Source of the DNA: Mytilus californianus
Taxonomy: Eukaryota
Assembly (NCBI RefSeq): GCF_021869535.1
Contig: NW_026262593.1
Location: 23,498,001 to 23,562,000 of the forward strand
Direction of reading: 5' to 3'
DNA length: 64,000 bases
The position numbers and the translations under genes were made by a program. Positions 540 through 63,625 of this stretch are shown here, piece by piece; within the stretch, counting starts at the first letter, position 1; each line of letters starts with the position of its first letter. The notes under the pieces are model-generated. The model was not told where the DNA came from. It did no database searches and saw nothing but the letters and a program-made list of their open reading frames with translations.

Positions 540-1060
540 CGTTACTTTTGTGGCGTTGATTCAGTCGTGTGAAAGACAGTTCGTGGTTCTGTTGTGCTGT
601 TTTTGTGTGCTGTCCTATGTTGTTTTACGTGTTCGTTTTTATTCTGTGGTTAACATGTCGAAATGTTCTAATGTATTGTTTATTTGTGTATTTCTCTGTC
701 CTGAATGTTCTTGCATTTATTTGTACTGTATTCCTGTCATGTAATGTTGTCATTTTAGTGTTATATTTAACATTGCCATAAAAGCACGAGGTTTGGCTAG
801 CCACAAAACCAGGTTCAACCCACCATTTTTTCTTAAAATGTCCTGTACCAAGTCAGGAAAATGGCAGTTGTTATCTTATAGTTCGTTTCTGTGTGTGTTG
901 CATTGTCATTTGTTTTTTGTTCACTTCAGTGTTTTTGTTGTTTCGTTGTTTTCCTCTTATAGTTGATGTGTTTCCCTCGGTTTTAGTTTGTCACCCGGAT
1001 TTGTTGTCTCTGAATCGATTTATGACTTTCGAACAGCGGTATACAACTGTTGCCTTTATT
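540..1060 (+). mobile_element. PLE-derived 3' UTR repeat, subfamily R4
   Basis: 680-1060 aligns with 54960-55352; contains the twister motif; ends CTGTTGCCTTTATTT. Confidence 0.75.
774..866 (+). ncRNA. Type-P5 twister ribozyme-like motif (R4; P2 disrupted)
   Basis: P5 UGCCAU/AUGGCA; GA-GGU pairs with L4 UACCAAGU; P3 CAUUUU/AAAAUG; P4 CCUG/CAGG; P2 3' strand mutated. Confidence 0.65.
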
Positions 1061-1119
1061 TGCTACAGTTCTATTTTGAATATAATTATTTAGATTTGAT
1101 ATATGATGTTCAGTTTGAC

Positions 1120-1530
1120 AAACAATGTGGGAGAAGGAATTGTTTATGTCGTAAAGCTGCCAATACTACAAATGTAGCAGTTCTTTCACCAGCTCCTTTA
1201 CAAAACAAAGTTATACTATCTACGTAAAACTGAGAACTCAGTTTATGTATTAACATTTATAAACACGTGTGGCATTCAGTACTTGGGAGAAACAATGGAC
1301 AAATTTTATATTCGGCTAAATAACCATCGATCATGGTACAAAACCAACAAAAATTGTCCCCTCATCAGACATCTTTGCTCAAAGAAACATCATTTTGATA
1401 ATGTTACTTTTCAAATCATAGAAGTGAACACTGTGGGACACCACGGCGAGAAGGAGAAGAGAAAACTTTTGGATCCACCAGCTCCATACTTTAGAACCTG
1501 ATGGTCTAAATGAAAAAGACGAGAAAAGAT
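1120..1530 (+). pseudogene. GIY-YIG endonuclease remnant of a Penelope-like element
   Basis: CGRRNCLC...SVYVLTFINTCGIQYLGETMDKFYIRLNNHRS...HL..H...IIE, then frameshifted WIHQLHTLEPDGLNE: typical PLE endonuclease motifs, broken by indels. Confidence 0.8.
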
Positions 1531-2070
1531 ACAGGAAAGATAAAAAATAATTTATTATGTAGCATCATCCTTAACATCTCTGTAATATTGGCCAATGGAC
1601 GTTGCAAACTTAACTTACTTTAACAATAAAAAATCTTGAACTTCATTCAAATTTTGAATTTATTTATAAGCAGCAAACATTTACTGTACAATCAGGTGTA
1701 AATGTTTCTTACATATAATTGATATTTTCCCTTACACATGTATATTTTGCTTTTTACGAGTGCGTATTTGTGTGTGCACACTATTTCACAAGCAAACGTT
1801 GAGATGTTACAAGTACAGCAATAATTAAGTGAAAGAAACCAATATTTTGATTAAAGTGTTGTGACATTGGTACTGATCTGAGACGTATAGCAAGACAGTT
1901 GACATGTTTTTCATTGATGTTATTCGGATTTGAAATAGACATTTGTAAAATAAATTATAAACTGTATTTTCTATTTGAAAAACACTTTGGAATGAAGGCA
2001 TTTGAGAAACTCTATGCAAATTTTGTCATGGAAGAAGACATTTGAAAACTCTATATAAACTACTACAGTG

Positions 2071-2275
2071 ACTGTAAATTCAGAAATTATTGCGTGCATT
2101 TATTATTGCGATTTTGTCATTTTAGACTAAAATGCGATTTTAATCTTTGCGATATTGAGAAAATTCCTGTTTAATTCATATAAAAAATTTCAAAATGCGA
2201 AATTAAATTATTGCAATTATAAGCCTGTCGTATTTTTCGCAATAATAAAAACATCGCAATAATTTCAGAATTTAC
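2071..2275. mobile_element. MITE (ACTGTAAA...TTTAC family)
   Basis: Inverted termini actgtaaattcagaaattattgcg / cgcaataatttcagaatttac. A second MITE half ending tttacagta follows at 2280-2442. Confidence 0.7.
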
Positions 2276-2699
2276 GCTTATTTTCGCGGATTCTTTATTT
2301 TTATTGAAATTTAATTTTACGATTTTCAAATTTACTTGATGTAGTTAATTAAGGAAAGATTCAAGTCTTACATATTCGCGACAATTTAAATCCGCGTTAT
2401 TTTTCTACTCGCGAAAGTCGTGAAAATTAGTTGGTTTACAGTATGTCCCGTCGATTTTAGACTGCAACTCCTCAGTATGAGGATATAAAGACTATGCATG
2501 TTTATTCTCAGTGGATTCCCGCGATGTTAAAATCGGTAAACAACTGTTGCTTCTTTATTGTTCAAAAGGAAAAATTTCTCTCATGTGCTAGAGGGAACCA
2601 TGTTCATTTATGAACCGGACAACTGAATCGTTACCGCTTGATACATTTTACATCTCATAGATAAACACAAAGATAACTAACTAAAAGTTAGATCATCAG

Positions 2700-2960
2700 C
2701 TCAGTATGCGGTGCTTTGGTTATGACATGTTTTATAATATACTTTTGCAATTAAATTATATTCCTCCGTTGATAAATTGAGCAATTATTGAAAACTAAAT
2801 AGGATTCCGAATTCTTCAGGCAAATTTGACCTTATTTGGTATTTGTAGGCCCTTTTGATCTTATAGCTCTTCACGTGTTAGTGTAGTTTAATTATATGGG
2901 TATAACGGTTCCCGATGAAGGTAAATTCAGATAAGCGCTTCGTTCAAAACATTATAAAGT
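2700..2960 (+). mobile_element. Degenerate retrozyme-like element with hammerhead-like motif at 2905-2945
   Basis: cccgatgaaggtaaattcagataagcgcttcg, homologous to 19821-19870 and 7668-7722(-). Confidence 0.5.
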
Positions 2961-3401: not shown

Positions 3402-3483
3402 TCAGATTCCTGACTTAGGACAGGTGCAAACAAATGCAGCGGTTTTAAACGTTTTAATAGGTGCCAACCTTCACCCTACCTGA
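3402..3483 (-). ncRNA. Type-P5 twister-like motif (R1; one P2 mismatch)
   Basis: RC: caggtagGGU-GA-AGG...UAA-AAC-CGC-ugca..ugca-CCUG-UCCUAAGU-CAGG-A-aucuga. Confidence 0.7.
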
Positions 3484-4030: not shown

Positions 4031-5602
4031 TATGTAATTATAAATAGTGAGACTAGATATAACACTGAATAAGTAAACATCAAATAATAAAAATACACTA
4101 CAAATTGTATCAACAGGTCAAATTAACACGAAAGTACGATTTGAGAGTACTTGCAGTTACTGAAAGCTAGTTAAAAGCCAAAAACAATTAATAATAAAAA
4201 AAGCATGCACCAGAGACTAAAATCAACTAAAACACATCCCAGGGATTTAGTGTTTTAACGCCATGGACTGTCAAAGAAGACATGACTTGCGCAATGCCAA
4301 AATAAAAGTATCGACAGGCAGTAGGATAGTTTGGAGTTAACCTGTTTATAAATATGTATAATGTAATATATAGATAGAGTAATCTCTATATAGAAAATGA
4401 ACGTGGATGTGTATTTATACATCCCAAAAAACCGTTTGAAAAGAATACAAATTTAGTTATGTTTTAATTTGCTGATGACAAAATCGATATTTGCGCCAAT
4501 GTAAACTATATTCAAAGATCTAATTACAACATTGGTAAGATAATTCTATGTCATTTGGTCTCTGGTGGAGAGTTGTCTCATTGGCAATTACACCACATCT
4601 CCTTATTTTTATATACAACAGTGATTTCGTGTATCCCGTCAGATAGTAAAGGCTGAGGCTTTGCTTGATGAATGTGTAACTTTAATAGTTTTGTTACAAA
4701 GATGATTTTGAGAACGCTTGTAAAATATTGAAGGGAAATTGTTTACTTGTATATTAGGCTATACAATAATCCTCGCTTGCTCATTTTGGAGCCATAATCA
4801 TTTCCACATGTATACAATTAGACAATTAACTGAAACAACAATGTTTTCTTTTTTAAACATTTCAAGAAAAATCAATAGTTTGTCAGTTCTAGAGTTGTGT
4901 GTTACTGCCTTTTACTATTAGCAAGAGGTACAATAGTATATAGAAAATAACAGTGCCGAGCATTGTCTGCGTTTCGTGCCGAATCCTTATATCGTGTATA
5001 TGTCAAGTCAATACACTATTGTTGTCTTTATACTGCAATCTTAAAGAATGTTATACCCATTGTGTGTTCTCATTTTGCTTTTAAAAATATGTTTAAAACT
5101 GCTGTCATAAGGATCACCCTAGAAATGTTTTGGCGGAGTAAAATTGTTATGTTTCAAAATGTGAAAGCATGCAGTTCATGCTGTCGGTTGAACGAGTGCG
5201 GCAGATGTCAGAATAGAACAATTAGAAATGAATATCAGAAATTATACTTATTAACCTTATCAAATAAAAAGATCAATTAAGAACAAAAGATTTTGTATAA
5301 TTTGTATGGGATAAATGAGTAGTAATGAGTTTATGTCGGTGACAGCCTCGCGTAAGTGTATTCATTTCATTACGAATTTAAAATTGATATGCGTGGTTAT
5401 CACATGAAAATATAGTTTACATTGGCACTAATATCGATTTTGTCATCAGCAAATTAAAACATAACTAAATTTGTATTTTTTTCAAGTGGGATGTATAAAG
5501 ACACACCCACGTTCGTTTAGATCTATAAAGAGGTTAAACTCCTAACTATCCTACTGTCTGTCGATACATTTATTTTGGCATTGCACTAGTCGTGTCTTCT
5601 TT

Positions 5603-5660
5603 GACTGTCCATGACGTTAAAATACTAAATCCCTGGGATGTGTTTTAGTTGATTTTAGTC
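5603..5660 (+). promoter_or_regulatory. SECIS-like element (form 2)
   Basis: AUGAC / 10-bp helix GUUAAAAUAC:GUGUUUUAGU / unpaired AAA / mini-stem AUCCC-GGAU / UGAU; helix I GACUG:UAGUC. Confidence 0.7.
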
Positions 5661-5877
5661 TCTGATGCATGATTTTTTATTATTAATTGTTTTGGCTTTT
5701 AACTAGCTGTCAGTAACTGCGAGTACTCTCAAATCGTACTTTCTTGTTTATTTGACCTGTTGATACTAATTGTATTGCTTTTTGTTATTTAATGTTATTC
5801 AGGGTTATATCTGGTCTATATACCAGCTTTTATAAGTGTTTGGTTTAACTATAAATTTTCACTTCGTACTATGAACA

Positions 5878-6310
5878 TCAAAATTATTTATTTTGTAATA
5901 ATATTTCCTTTCTCTATTGGTACTGTACACATATACCTGACAACAAAATTATTTTCATTTACCTGTGTTTAAAGTTATTGCAAATGGATGGTATTTTTGT
6001 TCCGAGCATATTGTTTTTCTGTAATTGTTTAACATTTCTTACCGATATAACATGTTACTTTTATTATTCTTCCCTTAGTTTATGTATTTTGTATTCAAAA
6101 TTATTTATTTTGTAAAAATATTTCCTTTCTCTATTGGTACTGTACAGGTATACCTAACAACAAAATTATTTTCATTTACCTGTGTTTAAAGTTATTGCAA
6201 ATGGATGGTATTTTTGTTCGAGCATATTGTTTTTCTTTAATTGTTTAACATTTCTTACCGATATAACATGTTACTTTTATTATTCTTCCCTTAGTTTATT
6301 TATTTTGTAT
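5878..6310. repeat. Tandem duplication, 2 x about 218 bp
   Basis: Units start at 5878 and 6096 (caaaattatttattttgt...) and are nearly identical. Confidence 0.9.
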
Positions 6311-6445
6311 TTACATTGTGTCATAGGTCAAATTTATTTGTTCAGTGTATGTTCAATGTTGTTAATATGTCCTTTGATTGAATTAAGCTATTTCAGTTGA
6401 TATTTTATAGTGTGTCTTTCTATGTTGTGATGTTACACTATTGTT

Positions 6446-6529
6446 TCAGAAAAAGGGTGAAGGTTTGGTACCATTAAAACGTTTAAACCCGCTGCATTTG
6501 TTTGCACCTGTCCTAAGTCAGGAATCTGA
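6446..6529 (+). ncRNA. Type-P5 twister ribozyme (R1; apparently intact, predicted cleavage U6484^A6485)
   Basis: UCAGA..GGU-GA-AGG-[P1]-UAA-ACC-CGC-UGCA(6)UGCA-CCUG-UCCUAAGU-CAGG-A-aUCUGA; all core pairings satisfied. Confidence 0.85.
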
Positions 6530-7049: not shown

Positions 7050-7365
7050 GATCTTATATTATTATACTTCATGTACATGTCAAAATGCCAGATTTTGATT
7101 AGTTAATACGATGTAGATAATTTACTCTATCCCATGGCAAATACTCTAAGACGTCATAGTTTATTACTTTAAATTTGAAATTTACCAGACAGTAATAACA
7201 GAACATTCAATATAATATATTAAATAACCCATAGCTGAGAGGGTGATAGAGCAGATTTTTACCCCTCGAAAAGACATTGTCAACCTTGGCTTCGCCTCGG
7301 TTGACAATGTTTCTCTGGGTAACAATCTGCTCTATCACCCTCTCAGCGATGTGTTATTTATATAG
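7050..7365. mobile_element. Non-autonomous element with a long hairpin (7221-7360)
   Basis: ctgagagggtgatagagcagatt...cattgtcaacc-ttggcttcgcctc-ggttgacaatg...aatctgctctatcaccctctcag; upstream GACGTCAT. Confidence 0.7.
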
Positions 7366-12596: not shown

Positions 12597-13811
12597 ATGC
12601 ACATATTTACAGCTGTCAGATTTAAGTTTCCATTCATTTTTATTTTATCGTGTATACTGTTTTACGTCGTTTATGGACAGACCTCTACAAATATCAAGCA
12701 GTTATATACCGATATTTTTACAAGTCACCAAAAGTCAGTTATTCCCAATTCTAATTTTTCGCAGCCTTTAGAAATAACGGTGAAGCTATTTTTGCTAACA
12801 ATAACACGATTTGATGAAGTGGACGAAACATTAGACACTGGAGTTGCAATTCAGACTACCTGGAATGATGACGGAATTTCATGGAAACCGTCTTCATATG
12901 GTAATGCGGAATCTATCGTCGTGCCTCACACAGATATTTGGACACCGAAATTGGTACTATTAAATTCCGTTGAAACATATGAACCATTAGGAGGAGATAA
13001 CGATCTCCTTGGAACAGTTCGTCACAACGGTTCTTCAACTATAATCGTAGGCGATGTTTTGTCTTCAAAATGTACACCAAATGTATACAAGTTTCCATTT
13101 GATTCTCAAACTTGTGAGCTGGTATTCGTTGTATGGGGATCAACAATAAACGACATACATTTGAAAGCGGATCTTGACCCCGTTGATATTAATTTCTTTA
13201 AACCAAACTCTGACTGGACATTGCAATCATATCAAGGTAATACATATCGTTTGCGTGTATACGATGTGTTTGAAATTTCACTTACCATCAAACGTGCACC
13301 TTTATATTACAACATAGTTGTAAGTTGTCCTACAATTTTGTTCGGATTATTAAATCCACTGGTTTTTCTTCTTCCGGTAGAATCTGGAGAACGGGTAGGA
13401 CTATCCATTACTGTGTTACTATCGTATGCAATATTTCTGACCATAGTCCAGATGGCTGTTCCAGCATCTTCCAATCCAATGAGTCTTTTATTAGTCTTTA
13501 TGGTAGTGACTATTGCTTTAAGCGGAATCATTGTTGCTGTAACTATTTATATATCATCACTTTATTATAGAGATCCACAGTTAAAAATGAACAATATTTT
13601 AAAATATATTGGATCAAGGCGGCACGGGAAAAAAAGATTGACTGCAGTTGATCCAGAGTGGGAGATTGAAAAGGAAAATGTGAAATACTCAACAGAGATG
13701 AACATAACGTGGAAGGATGTCTGCGATGGACTAGATACATACATGATGGTTATATCATATTGTAACATAATCTGTATCATCTGTTTATATTTCATTATTG
13801 TGTCGGTTTAA
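12597..13811 (+). CDS. Intronless nAChR-like Cys-loop ligand-gated ion channel subunit, non-alpha (404 aa)
   Basis: Signal peptide, Cys-loop CTPNVYKFPFDSQTC, 4 TM, PVESGERVGLSITVLLS M2 motif; no vicinal CC in loop C. Confidence 0.95.
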   Translation: MHIFTAVRFKFPFIFILSCILFYVVYGQTSTNIKQLYTDIFTSHQKSVIPNSNFSQPLEITVKLFLLTITRFDEVDETLDTGVAIQTTWNDDGISWKPSSYGNAESIVVPHTDIWTPKLVLLNSVETYEPLGGDNDLLGTVRHNGSSTIIVGDVLSSKCTPNVYKFPFDSQTCELVFVVWGSTINDIHLKADLDPVDINFFKPNSDWTLQSYQGNTYRLRVYDVFEISLTIKRAPLYYNIVVSCPTILFGLLNPLVFLLPVESGERVGLSITVLLSYAIFLTIVQMAVPASSNPMSLLLVFMVVTIALSGIIVAVTIYISSLYYRDPQLKMNNILKYIGSRRHGKKRLTAVDPEWEIEKENVKYSTEMNITWKDVCDGLDTYMMVISYCNIICIICLYFIIVSV

Positions 13812-14444: not shown

Positions 14445-14795
14445 TAAAAATAAGAAGATGTGGTGTAATTGCCAATGAGACAACTCTTTACTCTAGACCA
14501 AATGACATAGAAGTAAACAGCTATAGGTCACCGCACGGCCTTCAATAATGAGTGAAACCCATACCGCATAGTAAACTAAAAAATGCCTCGAAATGACAAA
14601 TGTAAAACAATTCAAACGAGAAAACCAACGGCCTGGTTTATGTACAAAACAATAAAAGAAAAACAAATATGATATACAGCAACAAACGACAACCACTGAA
14701 TAACAGGCTCCTGACTTGGGACAGGCCTCTTCAGATGGTGGCGGGGTAAACATGTTTATTGGCGCCAAACCCTCCCCCTAACCTGGGACAGTGGT
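14445..14795 (-). mobile_element. 5'-truncated PLE 3' end, subfamily R1b
   Basis: RC of 16810-17165; shared terminus ...cattggcaattacaccacatcttcttatttt. Confidence 0.8.
14704..14785 (-). ncRNA. Type-P5 twister-like motif (one A missing at the cleavage loop)
   Basis: RC CAGGU..GGG-GA-GGG-uuuGGCGCCaauAAACAUGUUU-A-CCC-CGC...CCUG-UCCCAAGU-CAGG-A-GCCUG. Confidence 0.65.
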
Positions 14796-16549: not shown

Positions 16550-17165
16550 TGGATGTTGGATGTGTATTGATTGATAATTTAGTCTTAGATGCATGATTTT
16601 TTATATTAGTTGTTATTGGCTTTGCACTAGCTGTCAGTAACTGCGAGTACTCTCAGATCTGTACTTAGTGTCTTTTTGTTGTAGGGATGTACAAGTACCC
16701 GGTCACGTCCACGTGTTTTTGTTATATGTATTTCTATTTGTATCCATCTGATGAGTTAAGCCTTTTTCAACTGGTTTTTATAGTTCGTTCTTATGTTGTA
16801 CTGTTACACCACTGTACCAGGTTAGCGGGAGGGTTGGAATCCCGCTAACATGTTTAACCCAGCCACATTCTGTATGTATGTGCCTGTCCCAAGTCAGGAG
16901 CCTGTAATTCAGTGGTTGTCGTTTGTTGCTGTGTTACATATTTGTTTTTCGTTCATTTTTTTGTACATTGATTAGGCTGTTAGTTTTCTCGTTTGAATTG
17001 AATTTACATTTGTGATTTCGGCGCCTTTTATAGCTGACTATGCGGTATGGGCTTTGCTCATTGTTGAAGGCCGCACGGTGACTAATAACTGTTAATTTCT
17101 GTGTCATTTGGTCTCTTGTGGAGAGTTGTCGCATTGGCAATCATACCACATCTTCTTTTTTATAT
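16550..17165 (+). mobile_element. PLE 3' UTR repeat, subfamily R1b (intron 4, antisense to host gene)
   Basis: Shares ctagctgtcagtaactgcgagtactctca with R1; contains twister; ends cataccacatcttctttttatatata. Confidence 0.8.
16818..16904 (+). ncRNA. Type-P5 twister-like motif (R1b; near intact)
   Basis: CAGGU..CGG-GA-GGG-[P1]-UAA-CCC-AGC-CACAU..AUGUG-CCUG-UCCCAAGU-CAGG-A-GCCUG. Confidence 0.75.
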
Positions 17166-24131: not shown

Positions 24132-26334
24132 CTGTTGCAATTGAAACAATGAAATAAAATCAAGCATACAACATACTTTTGTAAAATTTGTGCAAGAATG
24201 TCAGGGAACATGAAATACCCTCAAATGTTGTGTATAAAAGAAAAGAAAGAATATGGGTTTTCCATCCATGACACAAAATCCGTACATACACAGCAAAAAT
24301 TCCAAAAAAGCAAAGCACATCCTATATTGTTGTTCTTCAACTCAAACTCACAGTTTTACCACCGACAAACACTATGTACATGTAATGTGTTTTAACATGG
24401 TCAAAGTGGCAAGTGTCATGAGTGGAGTAGGAACTGATAACCCAGTCTGAAGCAAATGTGTTTATCCCTATTTTAGCGAGATTTGATCTGTTCATTCATT
24501 AGGTTTCTGTGTTGTGTTTTGCAGATTGCTGTACATTGTTTACATTAAAAAACAAATTCTCAAAAAACAAAAGTCCTCTTAACATTTCATATACAACCGT
24601 AATTTGTTTTGTTATCTATGTTGATATAAAATAAAATTGTCAGGACTTTATTTCACTGTTTGACCAATGTTATTTTTGATAAATCGTATTCAAATGTTAA
24701 ATACAGAGTTTCATATTCAATATTCCTCCCAAAGCAATCTGGGAATTGCAAAAACTAGACTATTTCGTTTGTTATAAAAAGAAAATATCACACAATTTGC
24801 GTATATGCCGAAATAAATTTAAATACTTTACTTTTGTGTTTTTGTTTTAGTAAAAGTTAATGCTGAGTTCACATTAAAACTTCCAGGAAAATATGCGCAT
24901 CGAGGAAAATTGATTATTCAATTTTATAAAGGGACAACCATTTGAATTTCTGGGTGGAGGGGCAGGAGGATTTTGACAATGGAATAGCTTGGCCTGGTGA
25001 GAACTGAAAATAATATCTTTGCACAATACAGGATGAAAATGAATAATCTGCTTCATGAAATGCGGGATACTTGAGGATATAAATGTGAACAAAAGTGAAA
25101 TTAAATTTTCGCACGGCAAATATAATTTTAATAATCCTGTTCTTGGAATACATTTATATAACAGTAACGAGGACACCAGATAAGACGATAAGTGTATTAA
25201 TAATTAGCTCGTTCTTTATGTTACTTTTATGAATAACCCCGATGTCCGCTACGAGTAATAGCTTTTCTAAAAAAACTCGTCGTCTTCTGCCTATTTTAGT
25301 TATACAATTGTTGGTTAAGTAAACACTGTAAAGTATAACCTTTAGTCAAGTAAAGAATTTTTCACAAACTGTTTAAAGAATCCTTGCATATTGTAGTACT
25401 TGACACATTCTAGAGGTTATTGATGTGTAAACTGCGACAGATTAACTCACACAACCTGAATAAAAGTCCGACATGGCAACTTAGTACATACAATGTAAGG
25501 AAACGATCAAAACATAATTCATTTCTTGTTTTAGTTTTATGTTTACAAGATGGCTGCATGCATTATATTGGAGAGTAATTTTTCTAGGCATTCAACGATC
25601 TCCTTTTTTTTTGTTCTCGTCCTTAGTATGTATTTAACGTTTAGACATTAAGAAATCAACAAGGAATTATGATAACATACATACAAGTGTATTGCCGTTC
25701 CAAGACCATTTTCACAGATGTTTTTGGTCAGAATATGATTTATTTTAGTGGAAAGTAACCCTCATGAATAAGAGTTTTAAGTTAACATGGTTAATTACTT
25801 ATGAATAATAATTATTCTTCAGTATCAATCACCGTGTTTATTGGTTTTGGTTTGTGAACATTATTACAGAAAGCAAGTTTTCAGGAGTACGTTCAATTAT
25901 TTAATCATAATTATATTAAAAAAACAGTACATTTATACATAATTTGTGTCACCATTTTTGACTGCTCCATCGAGCAAGTAGCCGGCAATTAGTTCATAGT
26001 TGACATTGCGTGTAATAGACATGGCAATCAAGCACTGACTATGAAGCAAAAGATGAAAACAGACTCAACATGCAGATATCTTATACGTTCGGGTATTTCA
26101 CATCCAATCTTTTATGGTAATATTCTTTACAAAGCACAAAAATGTCAGTATTCACCTCAAAAGCTAACAAAACCTTTAAACAGACTTATTAAGAAGGGAT
26201 ATAGTTACGATACTGTCATTAAAGATTGCATATTTGGCTTTAATATTAATTCACTTATAGGGTCTTTGCATCGGAATTAAACACATTTATTCTAAAACCA
26301 GTTGTTGGCATGACACGGGTTATGTTCTTCTCAT

Positions 26335-26395
26335 ATATTTTATGACGGTATAATACTAAACCCCTAACAGGAGGGATTGTGCCTAATATTCATAA
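26335..26395 (+). promoter_or_regulatory. SECIS-like element (3' GA mutated to AA)
   Basis: AUGAC-GGUAUAAU...AAA-CCCCU..GAGGG-AUUGUGCC-UAAU. Confidence 0.55.
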
Positions 26396-26593: not shown

Positions 26594-26684
26594 GGCTAGA
26601 GGTATAGGGGGAGGGTTGAGATCTAAAAAACATGTTTAACCCCGCCGCATTTTTGCGCCTGTCCCAAGTCAGGAGCCTCTGGCC
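26594..26684 (+). ncRNA. Type-P5 twister ribozyme (R2; intact core, predicted cleavage U26637^A26638)
   Basis: P5 GGCUAGAGGU:GCCUCUGGCC; P2 GGG:CCC; GA; T1 GGG:CCC; UAA; CGC; P3 CGCA:UGCG; P4 CCUG:CAGG, loop UCCCAAGU. Confidence 0.88.
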
Positions 26685-28399
26685 TTTGTTAGTCTTGTAT
26701 CATTTTTTAATTTTAGTTTCCTGTGTATAATTTGGAGTTTAGTATGACGTCCATTATCATTGAACTAGTATACATATTTGTTTAGGGGCCAGCTGAAGGA
26801 CGCCTTCGGGTGCGGGAGTTTCTCGCTGCATTGAAGACCCATTGGTGGCCTTCTGCTGTTGTCTGCTCTATGGTCGGGTTGTTGTCTCTTTGACACATTC
26901 CCCATTTCCATTCTCAATTTTATTTGTTTCATATTTTGTTTTTGTTTACACGATATATGATATTGAATGAAGAGTTCTACCACATAGGTTATTGATGAGA
27001 TTTTTTTCTATAGCAAACATAAGTACGGTATGGGGTTTTCTCATTGTTGAAGGTCGTACTGTGGCCTACAATTGCTTACTACCACTTCATTTGGTCTCTG
27101 GTGGATATTTGTGTCATTGGAAATCAAACCACATTTCCTCCTATTTATATTAGTACATACAGCTCTTTTTCAAAACATGTCTTTATAGCTTGTACATGTA
27201 ATCAAACAAACGAATTTTTCAGAAATGTTTGTATTAAGTTTTTAGCATCAGTGGAATAAAATCAGTGATTCTTTTAAAAAATTTAAAAAACGAAGACAAA
27301 TAAGAAAATATTAATTAAACTGATGAATATTTACAATATAGAAAGAAAGAAGGAAAGAAAGAAAGAAAAGTGCTTTCTGTGGTTTTTTTTTCGTATTTTA
27401 AAACCAAAAGAATTATTGTGAATATTATTACGTTTGATTTTTTGGATTTTTTTTTAATGGAGACTTCTTGTGTTGCAATGACATGAAATATATCAAGGTT
27501 TTCTGCGCCAGTTTAGTAACTTTTAGGAATTAATTCTTTTTTCACTTTTCAAACAAAAGTGATAGAAACTATGAAAAAGATAGCAATGAGTGCAAAGATG
27601 GTGCCTTTCTTGTGTTGTATAAAGTATATCTTATATATTAGATTTGCAATTCATTCTTTCATTTTGTTGTATTTTACTACGATGCCGGTAAATTAGCCAT
27701 CTAAGGATTTGTATTAATGATTCGCGGTGCTGTTGTCAATGAATTTCGTAAATAATTGTACCGTGTGCTTGATTGATATCTCAATTCTAAGAAAATCGAA
27801 TTATTTTAAGAAAAAAACAACTGAAAAGAGGCTTTGACGAATCTTACTCCGTTTAGAAAAAGAAGTATACACGCATGTTTACTGAATGCCGATTCTTGAA
27901 CAGCCAGCTATCCCTTTTTTTCGGTATATCACTTTAAATGGGAAATTTAGTACATAACAACCATCGTATGAAATTGAATTATTTTTTCTTTATATTATTG
28001 AAATAATGTAACGTATACGTACAGAATACATATTTTGCCAGTTATTGACCTAAGCTGTCTGGGACGCCATTTTATGACGTTACATTTTAAACGGAAGTAT
28101 TTCGAGGGTGGGTGTACCGGATTGAAGGATTTCATGTCACCAGCATTATTTGAATGCAGTATTACCCGAAATCATAATAACTAATCTCGCAACTTTTATT
28201 AAATTTTGCAACAACCCCAAAAATAACAAATTTCTGAAGTAACAGTATTTCATAAGTTTGGGCATGATACCGCCTTGGTATAAAATTAGGGGGAATCGAG
28301 CTAAATTCATAACATATTTACACTAAATCCATTGGATTTGTACTGATTAATATGTATTCTTGTCTAAAAGAGCATGGTTATTTTATTAATTGATTCTTG

Positions 28400-28760
28400 C
28401 CAATCTGATTTTTGCAGTTTGTTATTACGTTGTGATGTTACACCACTGTCCCAAGTAAGGGGACGATGCGCACTCATAAACAATTTTAACCCTGTTACAT
28501 TCTATAGGTGCTTATCCCAAGTCAGGAGCATGTAATTCCGTGGTTGCCGTAGGTTGCTGTCTGTCATACATGTATATGTTTTTTTTGTTTATTATACTGT
28601 CACGAAAAAGCCGTTGTCTTTTTTTTTCAATGAATTGTTTCACATTTTGTCATGTCATGGAATAATCGATTATAGCTTAATATACGACATTGGCCAGGGT
28701 TTTGCTCATTATTGAAGGCCGTTCAATGAGCTATTACTTCTCTACATCCATTCATAATTT
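28400..28760 (+). mobile_element. Degenerate R1b-type copy with decayed twister (about 28448-28535)
   Basis: ...ggggacgatgcgcactcataaacaattttaaccctgttacattctataggtgcttatcccaagtcaggagc. Confidence 0.55.
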
Positions 28761-31071: not shown

Positions 31072-31163
31072 GGCTAGAGGTATAGAGGGAGGATTGAGAT
31101 CTCACAAAACATGTTTAACTCCGCCGCATTTTTGCGCCTGTCCCAAGTCAGGAGCCTCTGGTC
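31072..31163 (+). ncRNA. Twister-like motif (R2; mismatches in P2 and T1)
   Basis: Same layout as 26594 with AGG-GA-GGA and CUC substitutions. Confidence 0.65.
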
Positions 31164-32060: not shown

Positions 32061-32067
32061 TCTTTTA

Positions 32068-37159: not shown

Positions 37160-37670
37160 TATGGAGCTGGGATGTCAGTAACTGCTAATAGTCCTTTGTT
37201 CATTTATGTTTATCTTTGTCATTTGCTTAGTTTCTTCTGTTACCTTTTCTAACATCTTACTCGACTTCTTTTAAATTGAGTTTCACTGTGTGTTTTGATG
37301 TGTGTTTGTTTATTCCACATTGGCTAGAGGTATTATAGGAGGAGGTTTGAGGTCTGAAAAAACTTGTTTAACCCAGCCGCAATTTTGCGCATGTCCCAAG
37401 TCAGGAACGATAATTAAACCTCTAGCCTTTGTTAGTCTTGTGTGTTTCTTTTTTTTAAATTAAGGTTCATTTGTATGTTTCGGAATTTAGTGTGGCGTCC
37501 ATCTCGCTTAACTAGTATACATCATTGTTTAGGGGCCAGCTGAAACCCGCCTCCGGGTGCGGGATTTTCTCGCTGCGATGAAGACCCTTTGGTGGCCCAT
37601 GGCCGTTTTCTGCTTTTTGGTCGGGTTGTTGTCTCTTTGACACATTCCCTGTTTCCATTCTCTATTCTAT
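37160..37670 (+). mobile_element. R2 3' UTR copy with degenerate twister (37322-37427)
   Basis: Colinear with 26430-26925; P5 variant GGCUAGAGGU:ACCUCUAGCC displaced by a short insertion. Confidence 0.8.
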
Positions 37671-38364: not shown

Positions 38365-38830
38365 TAGATATAGAAAGATGTGGTATGAGTGCCAATGAGA
38401 CAACTCTCCATCCAAGTTACAATTTATAAAAGTAAACCATTATAGGTCAAGGTACGGCCTTCAACACGGAGCATTGGCTCACACCGAACAGCAAGCTATA
38501 AAGGGCCCCAAAAAATTACTAGTGTAAAACCATTCAAACGGAAAAACCAACGGTCTAATCTATATAAAAACGAGAAACGAGAAACACGTATGAATTACAT
38601 AAACAGACGACAACTACTGTAATCAGATTCCTGACTTAGGACAAGTGCAAACATTTGCAGCGGGATTAAACGTTTTAATGGAATCAAACCTTCTCCCTTT
38701 TCTGAAACAATAGTATAACATCACAACATAGAAAAACACACTATAAAATATCAATTGGAAGGCTTAACTCAATCAAAAAACTTACATTAACACACACAAT
38801 GAACGAATAAATTTGACCTGTGACACCTGA
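38365..38830 (-). mobile_element. R1 3' end copy
   Basis: Aligns with 3144-3610. Confidence 0.85.
38623..38705 (-). ncRNA. Type-P5 twister ribozyme (R1; apparently intact)
   Basis: RC UCAGA..GGA-GA-AGG..UAA-UCC-CGC-UGCA..UGCA-CUUG-UCCUAAGU-CAGG-A; P2 GGA:UCC covaries with GGU:ACC at 6446. Confidence 0.8.
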
Positions 38831-51911: not shown

Positions 51912-53087
51912 ATGCATTTACGAAACTTTGGAGTGCTTCTTATGTTCAGTATTATAACATTTATCGAACTTGTCTATGCTCAAAGTCATGCTGATGTTAA
52001 AAAGCTCTACACTGATTTGTTCGCTGACTATACAAAAGAAATCCTACCTACGGCGGACCAATCTAAACCATTAGTGGTAGGAGTTACATTTTACATGGCT
52101 TCATTCAATTCGTTTAGTGAGGTAGAAGAAACCATTTCACTTACTGCAGTAGTGAACATGAATTGGACTGACCCCGCTCTTATGTGGAATCCAACCTTGT
52201 ATGGTAATGTAAACTCTATCACAATTAATCCGACAAATTTGTGGCTTGCCCAACTATTTCTTACAAACACGGTAGACTCGATGAATCCGATAGGAGATGA
52301 CACAAAATTTTATCCTACAATTGTGTACACTGGAGAGGTGATTTATAATCATGGCGGAATTCTTAAGGCTAAATGCCCAACGAATATATCAAAATTTCCC
52401 TTTGATACTCAGACATGTACACTACAATTGATAACTTGGGGATTTTTTCAATCGAATCTTTTACTATCTTCCAATTTCGACAAAGCCCGTCTTGACTTCT
52501 TTGCTGCACATTCAGACTGGAATCTGTTAGAATACTCTACAAGTGTTAAGAAGGAGTCTTCCGGATACAGTATGTTAAACGTGAAACTAACTTTTAAACG
52601 CGAGCCGTTGTATTTCACAGTAATGATAATTCTTCCGACACTTCTATTTTCCCTTTTGAATCCATTAGTTTTCGTCTTACCAGTAGAATCTGGAGAACGA
52701 GTGTCATTATCGATGACTATTTTACTGTCATATGCCATATTTTTAACACTTGTGTCAGCTTCGATTCCTGCCTCTTCAAATCCAATGTGCGTTTTATTGA
52801 TTGCTATGATCGCTATTATCTCGATCAGCGGAGTAATTGTAATTGGTTCTATTATCAATGCAAAATATTTCTTTCTAGAAAATGGCGAAAACATTGGAAT
52901 GGTAATGAAATATTTCACCAAACTATGGTTGAGGAAAAAGAACAACGTGATTCCGATAGATGAATACAAAGAACCTGCCATTAGGGGAAAGGATATAACG
53001 GAGATGTTAGATTTTCTTTTTTTCTATGGAACATATATTTCAATCATTGTAATCATTTCTGGTTATTTTTTGTATGTCTTGTTATAA
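51912..53087 (+). CDS. Intronless nAChR-like Cys-loop receptor subunit, non-alpha (391 aa), duplicate B
   Basis: About 86% aa identity to 46720-47895 (54 differences, hand count); intact ORF. Confidence 0.95.
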   Translation: MHLRNFGVLLMFSIITFIELVYAQSHADVKKLYTDLFADYTKEILPTADQSKPLVVGVTFYMASFNSFSEVEETISLTAVVNMNWTDPALMWNPTLYGNVNSITINPTNLWLAQLFLTNTVDSMNPIGDDTKFYPTIVYTGEVIYNHGGILKAKCPTNISKFPFDTQTCTLQLITWGFFQSNLLLSSNFDKARLDFFAAHSDWNLLEYSTSVKKESSGYSMLNVKLTFKREPLYFTVMIILPTLLFSLLNPLVFVLPVESGERVSLSMTILLSYAIFLTLVSASIPASSNPMCVLLIAMIAIISISGVIVIGSIINAKYFFLENGENIGMVMKYFTKLWLRKKNNVIPIDEYKEPAIRGKDITEMLDFLFFYGTYISIIVIISGYFLYVLL

Positions 53088-54939: not shown

Positions 54940-55352
54940 TGAGGTTTACTTGTTGTAATGTACAATTATATTATTTATTTATGTATTTCTCAGTGCTGAG
55001 TGTTCTTGCGTTTGTTTGTATTGTATTCCTGTCACGTAGTGTTGTTATCTTAGCGGTATTTTTTACATTGCCATATAAGCGGGAGGTTTGGCTAGCCATA
55101 AAACCAGGTTCAACCCACCTATTTTTTTCTTAAAATGTCCTGTACCAAGTCAGGAATGTGGCAGTTGTTATCAGACAGTCCGTTTCTATGTATGTTGGCG
55201 TTTGCTTTTCTTGTAGTTCAGTGTTTATGTTGTCCGTTGTTTTCCGCTTATAGTTAATGTGTTTCCCTCGGTTAAAGTTTGTTACCCGGATTTGCTTTTA
55301 CTTAATCGAATTATGACTATTGAGCAGCGGTATACTACTGTTGCCTTTATTT
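54940..55352 (+). mobile_element. R4 3' UTR copy
   Basis: Aligns with 680-1060. Confidence 0.8.
55069..55163 (+). ncRNA. Type-P5 twister ribozyme (R4; apparently intact)
   Basis: P5 UGCCAUAU:AUGUGGCA; GG-GA-GGU; CAA-CC-CAC; T1 GGU:ACC; T2 AC:GU; P4 CCUG:CAGG. Confidence 0.78.
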
Positions 55353-55479: not shown

Positions 55480-56320
55480 GATATAAAAAGTAAATTAACA
55501 AAAATACCGAACTCCAAGGACGGAAAGTTCCTTATCTAATTGCAAAATCAATAGCTCAAACACATGAAACGAATGGAAAATAACTGTCATATTCCTGACT
55601 AGGTACAGGCATATCCTTATGTAGAAAATGGTGGTTGAAACCTGTTTTTATAGCTAGCTAAACCTCTCTCTTGTATGACACTACCATATAATTCCATTAC
55701 ATTGACAACAATGTGTGAGCAAAACAAACAGACATAATAGGTGAAAATGTCAAAAATTAGGGTACAGCAGTCACCATTGTGTTATAATCTTAATTATTAT
55801 AATAACAAATAACTATGTCAACAAAGAAAAACAAAATGACATAAATACACTCTATAGACAAAGCACGTTAGCAAAAATGAAATACAAGAATACAAAAAAA
55901 AAATACCATAGCACAATAACACAATAACGGGATGTATGAATACAGAGTCACGTCAAAAGGATATTACTAAAAATGAACTAATCAGTAAAGGTTAAAAATA
56001 TACAAAGACAAATAAAAGGACAATATATACGTAATTAAGATGATAAACAACGTCAGTACCCTGAATATATACTTCAAGACCATCATGTATTATTTGTGAA
56101 GATGATACTGAATATTTATCAACAATGTCTTGGTATCTTCCGATGAACTTTTTTTTAGAAAAAGGACGAGACGTTCTTTAACAAAACTCTTGTTCATTAA
56201 CATTCTGTTCAGAAACTGGTGACGTTTTATAAAGTCTGAGTAACAGTTGCAAGCTCTTTAATACAAAATAAGTTGGGAAATGTATATGCAGGTGAAGTTG
56301 GTATATTGCTCCTTAGGAGG
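55480..56320 (-). mobile_element. 5'-truncated Penelope-like copy: RT tail (56320-56060) plus 3' UTR, subfamily R3
   Basis: RC SNIPTSPAY..YISQLI..RACNCYSDFIKRHQFL...FIGRYQDIVDKYSVSSSQIIHDGL with frameshifts, followed by a twister-like motif. Confidence 0.82.
55585..55680 (-). ncRNA. Twister-like motif (R3; degenerate P2)
   Basis: P5 UGUCAUA:UAUGACA (compensatory vs R4); GA-GGU with L4 UACCUAGU; CCUG:CAGG. Confidence 0.6.
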
Positions 56321-58189: not shown

Positions 58190-58385
58190 TCTATCTTGCG
58201 TTTTCACATTTTCCTGATTTGTTGCCTGGAACTCTTTGCTTTTACGAGTGTTTGCCTTTTCAAGGTTTGTACTTTATTTAGCCTATATACCTGTTTTGTT
58301 TCGAGCATCACTGATGAGTCTGTAGTAGACGAAACGCGCGTCTGGCTTTCAAAATTTGAATCCTGGCATCTATGTTGTGTTTGAG
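58190..58385 (+). mobile_element. Hammerhead retrozyme copy
   Basis: Homologous to 63630-63830(-) and 49700-49860. Confidence 0.75.
58296..58365 (+). ncRNA. Type I hammerhead ribozyme (core intact, cleavage triplet mutated)
   Basis: CUGAUGA(58311)-GUCU guagu AGAC-GAAA-CGC..GC-UUU; sister copies have GUA at the triplet. Confidence 0.85.
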
Positions 58386-59616
58386 GGTATTTGCTTTTAC
58401 GCACGTTTGCCTTCTAATTTTCAAATCATTAAATATAAATATCGAAAAGGTGGAATATATCAAAAATATTACTTTATACATGTACATTTGAGCGTCGGAA
58501 AGAAAGCAAAAACTTGAACATTTGAAAGCCATGGGTGGATTAAAAATAAGACACGTTATGAGTTCTATATGACCAATGGAACCTGCAACGAATGACCTAA
58601 TTGATATAAGATGTGGTATGAGTGCAAATGAGACAACTCTCCATCCAAGTCACAATTTGTAAAAGTAAACCATTATAGGTCAAAGTACGGTCTTCCATAC
58701 GAAGCCTTGGCTCACACCGAACGGCAAGCTATAAAGGGCCCCAAAAATGACTAGTGTAAAACCAGCAAAATAGGAAAACCAACGGTCTAATCTATATAAA
58801 AACGAGAAACGAGCAACACTTATGAACCACATCAACAAACGACAACCAATGAACAACAGGTTCTTGAATTAAGACAAGTGCAAACAAATGCAGCGGGTTT
58901 AAACGTTTTAACAGGCGCCAAACCTTCACCCTAACCTGAAATAATAGTGTAACATCACAACATAGAAAGACACACTATAAAATATCAATTGAAATGGCTT
59001 TACTCAATCAAAGGACATATTAACAAAAACAATAAAATATACACTGAACGAATGTATTTGATCTATGACACAATGTAAATAAAAAATTAATAAAAAAAAA
59101 TAGGGGGTGAGATGTAAAACAATATCTGAAAGACAACTTCAACCTTGGACAAAATGCCGTTAAATAAAATAACGTACACATTAAATAAAAATAATTTTGT
59201 TGTAAGGAGGACATGGAGTACGGAAATATTTTTTACAAAATAAATTTGTTGTTCATAGTACGAGAACAGAAGTGAAAATTTATCGTCATACTAACTTATC
59301 AAAGGTGGTATATATTAAAAATAGTGAGACGAGATATAACACAAAATAAGTTAACATTAAATAACAAAAATGCATTACAATTGTATCAACAGGTCAAATT
59401 AACACGAAAGTACGATTTGAGAGTACTCGCAGATACTGAAAGCTAGTTAAAAGCCAAAAACAATTAATAATAAAAAGCATGCATTACCTGTGTATTATAT
59501 GACGCAGGTTTCTTCAAAAGCGATGATTTTCTAAAAATGTTTGAAATTTCACAGTGATATCATACTTTAACTTTGTTTAATATAAGTTATCTACGGATAT
59601 GAACGTAGATAACGAA

Positions 59617-60750: not shown

Positions 60751-61329
60751 TCAGAGACTAAAATCAACTAAGACACATCACAGGGATTTAGTGTTTTACA
60801 TGGACAGTCAAAGAAGAAATAACTTGTGCAATGCCAAAATAAAAGTATCGACAGGCAGTAGGATAGTTAGGATTTAACCTTTTAATTAATATGTATAATG
60901 ATATACCGGTATATAGATAAAGTAATCTCTATATAGAAAATGAACGTGGATGTGTATTAATACACCCCAAAAAAACATTTTAAAAGAATACAAATTTAGT
61001 CATGTTTTAATTTGTTGATGACAAAATCGATATTTGTGCCAATGTAAACAATATTCTAAGAACTAATTTCAACATTGATAAGATAACCTTTACTAATAAG
61101 TTTGTTTAAAAGTTCGACGAGTTTACACGGATCACATTGTGATTTCCGCGCTTTTAATACAATATTACCGTACAATTTGGGATGTGAAATACCGTTTTTA
61201 ATAATTTAATAAGGTACAGACACATTAACTAATCAAATCTTTGTATCAATGAAAGAATTTAGTAAAAGTTTTAGGTAATTTATGGTAACGAAATCCCTGA
61301 CTTAATAATTTACCAGTAAAGCCAAAGGA

Positions 61330-61640
61330 ACATCGCCGTCTATAAAAGGTAAATTAACAATAGGGAATGAAAAATCGTCTCTTTTGTCGTAAATTTTAGT
61401 ATAGAGTTTCCCTTTAGAAATTGAAATGTCTAAATCTAGAAAAGGACAACTACTGCTGTTTATGTTAGATTTATTTAAAGGAAGTTCCTTTTGGTAAATT
61501 TCGGTAGTATATTTAAAGAACTCTTGATTATTTAACGAAAAAATATTATCAAGATAACGGTAGGTATTGTTGAATGTATCAACCAAATGTAACAATGACG
61601 TGTCTTTACTGAGTTTGATCATAAACTGAAATCCAATTAA
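61330..61640 (-). pseudogene. Penelope-like RT remnant
   Basis: FNNTYRYLDNIFSLNN..IYQKELPLNK..CPFLDLDISISKGKLYTKIYDKRDDFSFPIVNLPFIDGDVP. Confidence 0.88.
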
Positions 61641-62102
61641 AAGATAAACAGTTGTTATAAATCATGTCAGTACCAACGTCCTAAATACTGAGTTGATAAT
61701 ATCCTCATAAATTAACAGTCCATTAGCAGTAAATGACCGCATCCGTCCACATAAAAACCATGATAAGTACATGAAGTAATTAATAAGTACAGAAAACCAA
61801 GAGTAGTGATGCAAGCTAGCATTTAACTACAGGTATTATATATTGTGTTTCAACTTTTAAACTGAATTTTGAGGGATAAACATTTGTTTGTAACGAATAA
61901 CTAATTCGTGAAATACTGAAACATGAACTTTATTTGTAATTAAGTCTTAACATGGGTAAATCAGTTTTAAGTCTAAATCTAAAAATCATATAATCACAAG
62001 ATTACTATGTACAAATCACTTTTAAAATCGCTATACATTCATCGAATGACAGGATATTTATTATTTTTATGTATCTGTGGAACTATTTGTTGAAATATAC
62101 AT

Positions 62103-62370
62103 AGTCCTGATGTTCAGTGGTTGTTGTTTGTTGATGTGGTTCATAAGTGTTTCTCGTTTCTCGTTTTTTATATAGATTAGACCACTGGTTTTCCTATTTG
62201 AATGGTTTTACACTCGTCATTTTTGGAGCCCTTTATAGCTTGTTGTTTGGTGTGAACCAAGGCTCCGTGTTGAAGGCCGTACTTTGACCTACAATGGTTT
62301 CCTTTTACAAATCATGACTTGGATGGAGAGTTGTCTAATTGGCACTCATAACACATCTTCTTATATCTAT
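62103..62370 (+). mobile_element. Truncated R1 3' end (no twister core)
   Basis: Aligns with 6525-6790. Confidence 0.8.
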
Positions 62371-62439
62371 ATATTCCTAAGTAACTATATACAAACTTAT
62401 TAATAAAGGTTATTTTATTAATGTTGTAATAAGGTCTTT

Positions 62440-63625
62440 TAATATTGTTTACAATGGCACTAACATCGATTTTGTCTTCAACAAATTAAAACATAACTAA
62501 ATTTGTATTATTTTCGAATGGTTTTTGGAGATGATTAATACACGTCCACGTTTATTTTCTACTTAGAGATTGCTTTATCTATATATAACATGATACATAT
62601 TTATTTTAAGGTTAAATCCTAACTATCCTACTGCCTGTCGATACTTTTATTTTGGCATTGCACAAGTTATGTCTTCCTTGACTGTCCATGGAGTTAAAAC
62701 ACTTAATCCCTTGGATGTGTTTAAATTGATTTAAGCCTCTGATGCATGATTTTTTATTATCAATTGGTTTTGGTTTTAACTAGCTTTCTATAAACTGTGA
62801 GTACTCTCAAATCGTACTTTCGTGTTAATTTGACCTGTTGACACAATTTGTAATGCATTTTTGTTATTCAATGTTTACTTATTTTGTGTTAAATCTCGTC
62901 TTGCTATTTTTAATATGTACCACCCTTGTATTTAGTATGACGAAAAATTTTCACTTCTGTACTTGTACTGTGAACAACAAATTTATTTATTTTGTAAAAA
63001 CTATTTCCGTACTCCTAACAATAAAATTATGATACTTAAATTTACCTGTGTACGTTTTTTTATTTAACGTCATTTTGTCCCAGTTAATAGTTGTCTTTCT
63101 GACATTATTTTACATATTTTTTATTAATATTGTATCTATATTGTGTCATAGATCAAATTTATTCGTTCAGTGTATGTTTACTTGTTTTTGTTTATATGTC
63201 TTTTTGATCGAGTTAAGCCATTTCAATTGATATTTTATAGTGTGTCTTTTTATGTTGTAATGTTACACTACTGTTTCAGGTTAGGGTGAAGGTTTGGCGC
63301 CTGTTAAAACGTTAAAACCCGCTGCATTTGTAAGCACCTGTTCTAAGTCAGGAGCCTGTTGTTCGGTGGTTGTCATTTGTTAATGTGGTGCATAAGTGTT
63401 TGTCTTTTCTCTTTTCTCGTTTATTATATAGATTAGACCGTTGGTTTTCCTGTTTAAATTGTTTTACACTAGTCATTTTGGGGCCCTTTATAGCTTGCTG
63501 TTCGGTGTGAGCCAAGGCTCCGTGTTGAAAGCCGTACTTTGACCTATAATTGTTTACTTTTTACACATTGTGACTTGGATGGAGAGTTGTCTCATTGGCA
63601 CTCATACCACATCATCTAATTTCTA
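62440..63625 (+). mobile_element. R1 3' UTR (right arm of inverted pair 2)
   Basis: Inverted copy of the left arm; colinear with 5410-6790. Confidence 0.8.
63277..63358 (+). ncRNA. Type-P5 twister-like motif (R1; near intact)
   Basis: CAGGU..GGU-GA-AGG..AAA-ACC-CGC..CCUG-UUCUAAGU-CAGG-A-GCCUG. Confidence 0.72.

Follow-up and report, generated by a model that had tools for sequence, protein, structure and literature searches.

Candidate type-P5 twister ribozymes in the 3' untranslated region of Naiad Penelope-like retrotransposons of Mytilus californianus

The stretch of DNA analysed here (the window) comprises 64,000 nucleotides (nt) of Mytilus californianus (RefSeq assembly GCF_021869535.1, contig NW_026262593.1, positions 23,498,001 to 23,562,000, forward strand). 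Judged from sequence and predicted folding, 16 modules in it are type-P5 (circularly permuted) twister motifs (Table 1). Their hosts are selenoprotein-type Naiad Penelope-like retrotransposons, in which the motif lies in the 3' untranslated region (UTR) and hence in the pseudo-long terminal repeat (pseudo-LTR). The helices and both pseudoknots are kept by compensatory change across Naiad lineages; the reverse transcriptases (RTs) of these lineages share 62-73% identity, and outside the motif their UTRs cannot be aligned.

Twister motifs in the window and their fold

A pattern for the P4 loop (CCTGTNCCAAGTCAGG, at most three mismatches) matched the whole window at 17 places against 0.59 expected. 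Two of these were look-alikes within the P5 arm of subfamily B copies, and the decayed minus-strand copy at 58857-58938, which the pattern did not match, was recovered by self-BLAST of the neighbourhoods. The covariance model R1, which rests on a MAFFT alignment, has 17 nested pairs and leaves out T1, was run with filters off and returned exactly 16 copies with 53-122 bits, the next best scoring 13.6 bits. All the 16 copies, from 774 to 63277-63358 and including the relic at 15566, were parsed by hand into P5b/J/P2b/GA/T1b/P1 region/NAA/P2a/T2a/P3/P4a/L4/P4b/J/P5a, and each parsed module is an exact substring of the window. A preliminary description of the window had claimed about 16 copies, which agrees with this count, and the coordinates of the hand parse include every one that it listed.

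Each copy shows the order P5, P2, GA, T1, N^AA cut site, T2, P3 and P4 with the loop U-NNN-AAGU. The conserved twister nucleotides are all present (G-A in L1, N^A-A, the C of T2, and U...AAG in L4), as are both pseudoknots. Among 39 distinct sequences, outside loci included, GA was found in 39/39, A1 in 38/39, A2 in 37/39, L4 U in 39/39, L4 AA in 38-39/39 and L4 G in 37/39, while N-1 was variable (U 30, C 5, A 2, G 1). A near-invariant core with a variable N-1 is the expected twister pattern.

T1, which joins L4 to the 3' strand of L1 by three pairs, was paired in 90.5% of cells even though it is absent from the alignment model, and it had five complementary states (CCC:GGG, CCU:AGG, ACC:GGU, CCA:UGG and GCC:GGC). 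T2, in which the L2 dinucleotide forms two pairs with L4, was paired in 85.9% as GC:GU (with one wobble), AC:GU or UC:GG; the canonical GC:GC occurred once in the 39 sequences. P4, with the loop U-NNN-A-A-G-Y and a closing G-C, was paired in 94.9%, including GCCG:CGGC in an outside locus. Four pairs of P2 were present in 26594, 6446, 38623, 60414, 63277, 58857, 14704 and most outside loci, with C:G, A:U or U:A as the outer pair; the copy at 16818 and the D copies do not reach four pairs in the canonical register. In minimum free energy (MFE) folds of single copies, 6446 gave P5, P2, P3 and P4, and the other copies gave most of these.

The hand parse reproduced the T1 states of the preliminary description (CCC:GGG, CCU:AGG and ACC:GGU), its P3 states (CGCA:UGCG, UGCA:UGCA, CACAU:AUGUG and CAUUUU:AAAAUG) and all five of its P5 types. 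Two statements stood in part: the P2 outer pairs it named were seen (C:G; A:U in 6446; U:A in 38623 and 60414), but the D copies and 16818 have only 2-3 Watson-Crick pairs in the canonical register, and the T2 states GC:GU and AC:GU were both seen, but AC:GU in subfamily D hinges on the P2 register.

Table 1. Features of the window and of three outside loci; twister motifs were assigned by hand parse and the covariance model R1
Feature	Position	Strand	Basis
Subfamily C twister motif, intact; P5 GGCUAGAGGU:GCCUCUGGCC, P2 GGGG:CCCC, T1 GGG:CCC	26594..26684	+	hand parse, R1
Subfamily C twister motif, decaying; C.A mismatch in P2 and in T1	31072..31163	+	hand parse, R1
Subfamily C twister motif, decayed; mismatches in P2, T1, P4; 12-nt insertion ahead of P5 3' arm	37322..37427	+	hand parse, R1
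Subfamily C relic, heavily decayed; P2, P4, P5 broken; cut site GAA	15566..15656	-	R1 53 bits
Subfamily B twister motif; P5 CAGGU:GCCUG, P2 GGGG:CCCC, T1 GGG:CCC; UAA minus one A; P3 weak	14704..14785	-	hand parse, R1
Subfamily B twister motif; P3 CACAU:AUGUG; P2 GCGG/CCCA, two mismatches in canonical register	16818..16904	+	hand parse, R1, fold
Subfamily B twister motif, decayed; T1b CGA, P4 CUUA	28452..28532	+	hand parse, R1
Subfamily A twister motif, intact; P5 UCAGA:UCUGA, P2 GGGU:ACCC, T1 AGG:CCU; predicted cut 6484/6485	6446..6529	+	hand parse, R1
Subfamily A twister motif, single P2 mismatch	3402..3483	-	hand parse, R1
Subfamily A twister motif, intact; P2 GGGA:UCCC, a compensated swap relative to 6446	38623..38705	-	hand parse, R1, fold
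Subfamily A twister motif; P2 GGGA:UCCC; single C.A mismatch in P4	60414..60496	+	hand parse, R1
Subfamily A variant; P5 CAGGU:GCCUG; N-1 = A; T1 UCU:AGG with one wobble	63277..63358	+	hand parse, R1
Subfamily A variant, 16th copy; P5 CAGGU:ACCUG; L4 decayed (UCUUAAUU)	58857..58938	-	self-BLAST, hand parse, R1
Subfamily D twister motif; T1 GGU:ACC, P5 UGCCAU:AUGGCA; P2b mutated (GCAC)	774..866	+	hand parse, R1
Subfamily D twister motif; T1 GGU:ACC, P5 UGCCAUA:UGUGGCA; cut site CAA; P2 register ambiguous	55069..55163	+	hand parse, R1, fold
Subfamily D variant; P5 UGUCAUA:UAUGACA; P2 decayed; L4 UACCUAGU	55585..55680	-	hand parse, R1
C-terminal end of Naiad RT open reading frame (last 77 codons) and TAA stop, upstream of C twister motif	26056..26283	+	tblastn, 82% identity to L016 ORF end
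Naiad RT fragment, motif C to ORF end, upstream of A copy 58857-58938	60999..61628	-	RT homology
SECIS-like hairpin, A-family 3' UTR, upstream of 6446 twister motif	5601..5662	+	SECIS_1 32.9 bits (gathering 35)
Fixed 3' terminus of C element; reads and contigs diverge into AT-rich flanks	26922..26924	+	loose ends in four runs, BLAST end points
Conserved 3'-terminal block of A/B elements, ending CATCTTCTTATATCTAT, about 283 nt after P4	6700..6790	+	12 occurrences in window
Outside locus L026; new compensated state T1 CCA:UGG			
Outside locus L024; new 9-bp P5			
Outside locus L028; new compensated states T1 GCC:GGC, P4 GCCG:CGGC, P2 ACUC:GAGU, T2 UC:GG			

Compared with the type-P5 twister (RF02684, clan CL00120; Roth et al. 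2014; PMC5408937), the order of elements is the same: P2 3' strand, G-A, T1 3' strand, P1 region, N^A-A, P2 5' strand, T2 dinucleotide, optional P3, P4 (U-CCC-AAG-Y) and the closing P5. The two also have in common a P2 of 4 base pairs (bp), a 3-bp T1, a 2-bp T2, a variable N-1 and a conserved A at the cut site. The Naiad motif differs in that L4 ends with U and not C, so that T2 is G.U/C:G or A:U/C:G, that T1 is not fixed as CCC:GGG, and that P4 is CCUG:CAGG. It also differs in the P1 region, where the strand after T1 is not complementary to the strand before N-1, and the P1 stem is replaced by two palindromes and a spacer of 3-5 nt. Rfam scores of the motif are below gathering. The whole window gave no Rfam match at the gathering score, and no twister was found there in the E-value search either; with a 141-nt stretch, the entire Twister-P5 model (RF02684) aligned to 26607-26673, scoring 23.1 bits where gathering is 37.6, and placed GAGGG, UAA, GC and UCCCAAG in register. 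Small-region searches gave only a partial twister-P1 match for a D copy and none for an A copy.

Only the copies at 26594, 6446, 38623 and arguably 63277 have intact cores. The remaining copies carry decay mutations, which fit neutral decay of retroelement copies once inserted. Because most copies are decaying individually, the covariation lies between source lineages. The copy at 26594-26684, with a predicted cut between 26637 (U) and 26638 (A), equals the family consensus in reads of the same organism except at 26625 (A>C).

Two details of the copies are recorded here. An odd P2 (GCGG versus CCCA) is common to 16818-16904, 55069-55163, 774-866 and the outside locus L022, though their subfamilies differ; it has two mismatches canonically, and a bulged C or a shifted register would give three pairs. 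In B copies, at 14777-14792 (-) and 28445-28460 (+), the P5 5' arm with its flank (ACUGUCCCAGGUUAGG) resembles a second P4/L4, which may be the vestige of a tandem twister duplication.

Covariation of helices and pseudoknots

Covariation was tested on 22 pairs, including T1 and T2 as pseudoknots, with partners slid by 1-3 columns and shuffles as controls. With the window copies alone, 85.2% of cells pair against 31-43% with slid partners, 13/22 pairs change on both sides against 3-6, and the covariation score reaches 0.370, where shuffles give 0.162 +/- 0.020 and none of 500 as much as 0.370. T1 was 92% paired in the window with two covarying pairs, and since it was left out of the model, alignment fitting cannot account for this pairing. 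In subfamily A, some copies have U:A as the outer P2 pair and others have A:U, a compensated swap among close relatives.

A gapped pattern with both T1 strands free matched 20 metagenome contigs, and the covariation measures hold with them added; the same pattern gave no matches on viral contigs. Outside loci were also reached through protein: homologues of the end of the open reading frame (ORF) were found by a profile-free protein search, and the downstream DNA was then inspected on the contigs. Three more twister motifs were present downstream of the ORF (L026, L024 and L028), about 310-1000 nt after its stop. Among the other protein-guided loci, no twister motif was found in L002, L023 and L029, and in L001, L025, L027 and L030 the downstream DNA was too short to assess; for one more place there was no DNA to inspect.

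For the 39 distinct sequences, 88.3% of cells pair against 27-46% with slid partners, both sides have changed in 18/22 pairs (shuffles 11.2 +/- 1.4, slid partners 5-10), and the covariation score is 0.416 against 0.036-0.068. Over all data sets, pairing is 85-88% against 27-48% with slid partners, and the score is 0.37-0.42 against 0.04-0.10. By G-test with average product correction, the proposed pairs rank 1, 2, 3, 9 and 10 of 6216 column pairs. It had been proposed from the window alone that the fold is under selection, and the covariation beyond both kinds of control, together with the new compensated states in the outside loci, bears this out.

The accompanying statement that the flanks of the subfamilies are largely unrelated holds for part of them. 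By BLAST, the similarity of C to A/B is confined to the twister, and D shares nothing alignable; but A, the CAGGU-type A variant and B have about 420 nt of flank in common at 70-92% identity, with the same 3' terminus.

Naiad host element, its transcripts and neighbouring features

The window itself contains only C-terminal parts of the RT. The whole ORF is present in the outside locus L016, which is 89.7% identical over 852 nt to the window C copy at 26063-26900. This ORF has an N-terminal GIY-YIG, a CxC motif, a DKA motif and a C-terminal RT, with four in-frame stops, all TGA, and a terminal TAA. A SECIS-like hairpin (SECIS_1 30.9 bits, gathering 35) lies 58 nt past the stop, and the twister motif about 320 nt past it. 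In-frame UGA with SECIS, and the GIY-YIG/CxC/DKA/RT architecture, are diagnostics of selenoprotein-type Naiads (PMC8557442). The Naiad host of the preliminary description is thus confirmed by the diagnostic motifs in L016, RT homology, the SECIS-like hairpin and a tandem signature. Some of the in-frame TGA codons of L016 are at GIY-YIG positions where Cys is expected, and with these codons and the sub-threshold SECIS-like hairpin (L016 660-2063 and 3562-3626; window 5601-5662) the lineage resembles the selenoprotein-coding Naiads of clams.

The order in the element is ORF stop, SECIS-like hairpin, twister and a fixed 3' end about 240-285 nt further. SECIS-like hairpins were also detected in L016, L021 and L005. 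L005, an A-type element, has the same layout as L016. RT identity to L016 is 71% for L005, 73% for L024 and 62% for L028. Both L016 and L005 start with their own 3' tail, as direct terminal repeats of 93 nt and 62 nt, which indicates a tandem or pseudo-LTR arrangement. Tail fragments also precede the 63277 copy (direct) and the 3402 copy (inverted). The A/B elements have a fixed 3' end and variable 5' ends, with AT-rich flanks past the terminus; at 58857-58938 a nested insertion interrupts the A copy. A putative A-family 5' end at 62388 was rejected as an element boundary, as it lies inside the last codons of the ORF. Pfam gave no match on the RT fragments, the pieces of the full Naiad ORF or the five ORF-end homologues scanned, so identity was set by motifs and pairwise comparison. 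In L016, L005, L021 and L020, Rfam found no hammerhead at E<=1, SECIS being the only match; canonical hammerheads have been reported as lacking in Naiads (PMC8557442).

Three further observations concern these elements. A 217-bp tandem duplication (5878-6311, 96.8% identical) lies in the 3' UTR of an A copy between the SECIS-like hairpin and the twister. A more distant Penelope-like RT fragment at 42689-43203 (+) is 36-47% identical to the RT of L016 and has no downstream twister by covariance model. At 26922, 482 reads of the RNA run X21 continue past the 3' terminus into one common sequence (agreement 0.73) and not into varied flanks; it may be a frequent junction, e.g. a tail extension or the head of a tandem copy.

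The C element is transcribed: in raw RNA-seq reads of one run from the same organism, the bin holding the twister had a depth of about 270, and the stretch immediately after it about 1030. In DNA-like contigs of the same organism, word depth summed to 2.8 million over the twister bin, while unique contigs close by had 33-47; in depth, the twister exceeds the unique flanks about 6e4-fold, a figure which is not a copy number. It suggests 1e4-1e5 copies of the C family alone. An earlier extrapolation to about 1e5 copies genome-wide is roughly in line with this depth, to the extent that depth, not being a copy number, can speak to it.

Other features were observed in the window. A type I hammerhead-like motif at 58308-58345 (+), scoring 25.8 bits against a gathering score of 34, has a palindromic CGCG stem III typical of hammerheads of Penelope-like elements and retrozymes. 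A relative of it stands inverted at about 63655-63700 (-), directly past the 3' terminus of the Naiad copy ending at 63631. The long near-perfect hairpin at 7234-7347 is far below threshold with plant microRNA models (51 vs 83 bits) and is probably an inverted-repeat element. Three intronless ORFs (12597-13811, 46720-47895 and 51912-53087, all +) are like nicotinic-receptor subunits; the first two have the Pfam ligand-binding and membrane domains, and the third is identical in length to the second. An ORF at 22807-24102 (-) is like IgGFc-binding protein. A diverged tandem repeat array with units 65-75% identical (31435-33620) directly follows the C copy ending at 31392.

The P1 region, cutting and alternative readings

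The interval from T1 to the cut site holds two palindromes which change sequence while staying palindromic. Variants of the first are UGGUACCA, GGCGCC, UGAGAUCUCA, UGGGAUCCCA, UGGCUAGCCA and UGGGCCCA, and those of the second are AAACGUUU, AAACAUGUUU, AAACUAGUUU and AACCGGUU. Both palindromes were present in 16 of 30 distinct regions, whereas shuffles averaged 2.0 and never exceeded 6. In cofolding predictions the homodimer is favoured over two monomers by 6-13 kcal/mol. Hammerheads of Penelope-like elements have a palindromic stem III and are thought to be dimeric, helped by the tandem layout (PMC6765202). We suggest that the canonical P1 may have been replaced by these two covarying palindromes, through which two copies probably pair, whether these are on separate RNAs or are the pseudo-LTR copies of a single tandem transcript, and that cutting may depend on pairing, as was proposed for stem III of those hammerheads.

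Two other known systems can be compared with the Naiad motif. The twister variants of RTE-clade elements (Perere-3 T-variants, PMC8501958; PMC7761336) are likewise twister-class motifs co-transcribed with a high-copy retrotransposon, and their canonical P1 is likewise not encoded by the element as a hairpin. These variants stand at the 5' end, remove the upstream co-transcript and build P1 from the target-site duplication (PMC8501958), whereas the Naiad motif stands in the 3' UTR, 240-285 nt before the 3' end, has the complete type-P5 fold with P3 and P5, and keeps sequence on both sides of the cut site. The pseudo-LTR hammerheads of Penelope-like elements and retrozymes (PMC4209133, PMC6765202, PMC7229834) also place a small motif of self-cleaving class in the terminal repeat of elements inserting in tandem, with a helix replaced by a short palindrome that is taken as a sign of dimer action. 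They belong to another ribozyme class, and Naiads were reported to be without canonical hammerheads (PMC8557442). Known links between twisters and retrotransposons are at the 5' ends of RTE elements (PMC8501958, PMC7761336), the Naiad paper has no mention of twister (PMC8557442), and our literature search found no paper linking the two.

Our preferred reading, which we regard as rather probable, is a type-P5 twister in the Naiad 3' UTR and pseudo-LTR, with a fold kept by selection, presumed self-cutting and probable pairing through the palindromes. The element transcript would cut itself between N-1 and A (e.g. 26637/26638), leaving a 2',3'-cyclic phosphate and a 5'-OH, and the twister would correspond in Naiads to the hammerhead of other Penelope-like elements and would process tandem or read-through transcripts. 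Several results weigh against it. The Rfam score stays below gathering, with no twister-P5 match for the A and D copies in small-region searches, and the parent element of subfamily D was not found, no RT being near it in the window. No excess of molecule ends was present anywhere in 26000-31400, in an ordinary cDNA library where 64% of reads were only 90-95% identical (diverged copies). The RNA-seq gives no support for in vivo cutting and speaks, though weakly, against efficient and constitutive cutting of the bulk transcripts; its weakness is that diverged dead copies account for most reads and that the library was standard cDNA. An active hammerhead of a Penelope-like element gave the same negative RNA result (PMC11167929). 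Among the 15 RNA-read joints listed, none was back-joined, 753 further joints lying outside this listing. Truncated copies beginning at the cut site, the footprint of a cleaved template, were not found in the window: the tail-only fragment at 62106 begins about 40 nt past the cut site, and the others are 73-135 nt long. As most inserted copies contain an uncut twister and none starts at the cut site, the retrotransposed template is usually uncleaved there.

These last results are what would be expected of a twister-derived structural element which no longer cuts, its fold being kept for RT binding, template marking, or palindrome-mediated dimerisation or packaging. No reads end at the predicted site, nearly all inserted copies hold the whole motif, the palindromes in place of the absent P1 resemble a dimerisation site, and insertion of an anole Penelope-like element in vitro was unaffected by hammerhead mutants (PMC11167929). 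But the nucleotides needed only for catalysis at the active site (L1 G-A, A1, A2, L4 U/AAG) are kept in 37-39/39 sequences, and every helix changes sequence while this core stays, which a mere scaffold does not need; the missing P1 is no obstacle either, as P1 is dispensable for cleavage in vitro (PMC5408937). So we hold such a scaffold to be unlikely. That there is no selected structure at all, the covariation being a by-product of subfamily kinship with a chance resemblance to twister, is very improbable and largely refuted. Non-pairs diagnostic of subfamilies do rank high in the G-test, so that the case for T1 rests on preserved complementarity and not on co-variation alone; few independent events stand behind the covariation of T1 and of P2, which also counts against our reading; and the Rfam scores are sub-threshold. 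Yet slid partners preserve relatedness and still pair in 27-48% against 85-88%, with 5-10 double-change pairs against 18, the loci found through protein homology only have the motif where it is expected, every helix showing new compensated states, and C resembles A/B by BLAST only in the twister.

It is also possible, though we doubt it, that the motif is an active monomeric mini-twister without partner, the palindromes serving as DNA-level target or protein sites or in an RNA dimerisation unrelated to catalysis. Twisters without P1 cleave at near wild-type rate (PMC5408937), single-molecule MFE folds already form P5, P2, P3 and P4, and a short G-UU(U)...(A)AA-C hairpin can close the first palindrome as a loop. 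Against a monomer, though not decisively, the second palindrome stands at the place of the P1 5' strand, right before the cut site, and covaries as CAUG, CG, CUAG and CCGG, and there is the parallel with the dimeric hammerheads of Penelope-like elements (PMC6765202). The strict form of the dimer idea, which we put forward tentatively, is that Naiad twisters are obligate dimers in which the palindromes substitute for P1 between molecules, so that cutting would occur only when two copies meet. If true, it would tie processing, and perhaps also circularisation or packaging, to a complete element being present, it would be the first natural dimer-dependent twister, and hammerhead and twister, two unrelated classes, would have converged on a palindrome-dimer design in Penelope-like elements.

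Twister is among the most widespread self-cleaving ribozymes, with a demonstrated role in one setting only, the 5' processing of Perere-3. Among Penelope-like elements, Naiads are the most numerous in many invertebrates, bivalves carrying tens of thousands of copies. Naiads offer a large natural set of twister variants, with five T1 states, an altered T2 and no P1, together with a concrete dimer hypothesis. They have been described as a clade without ribozyme, a view that encouraged seeing hammerheads as nothing more than passengers of Penelope-like elements. A conserved and covarying Naiad twister would make the carriage of ribozymes general in endonuclease-bearing Penelope-like elements, a need met twice with different catalysts.

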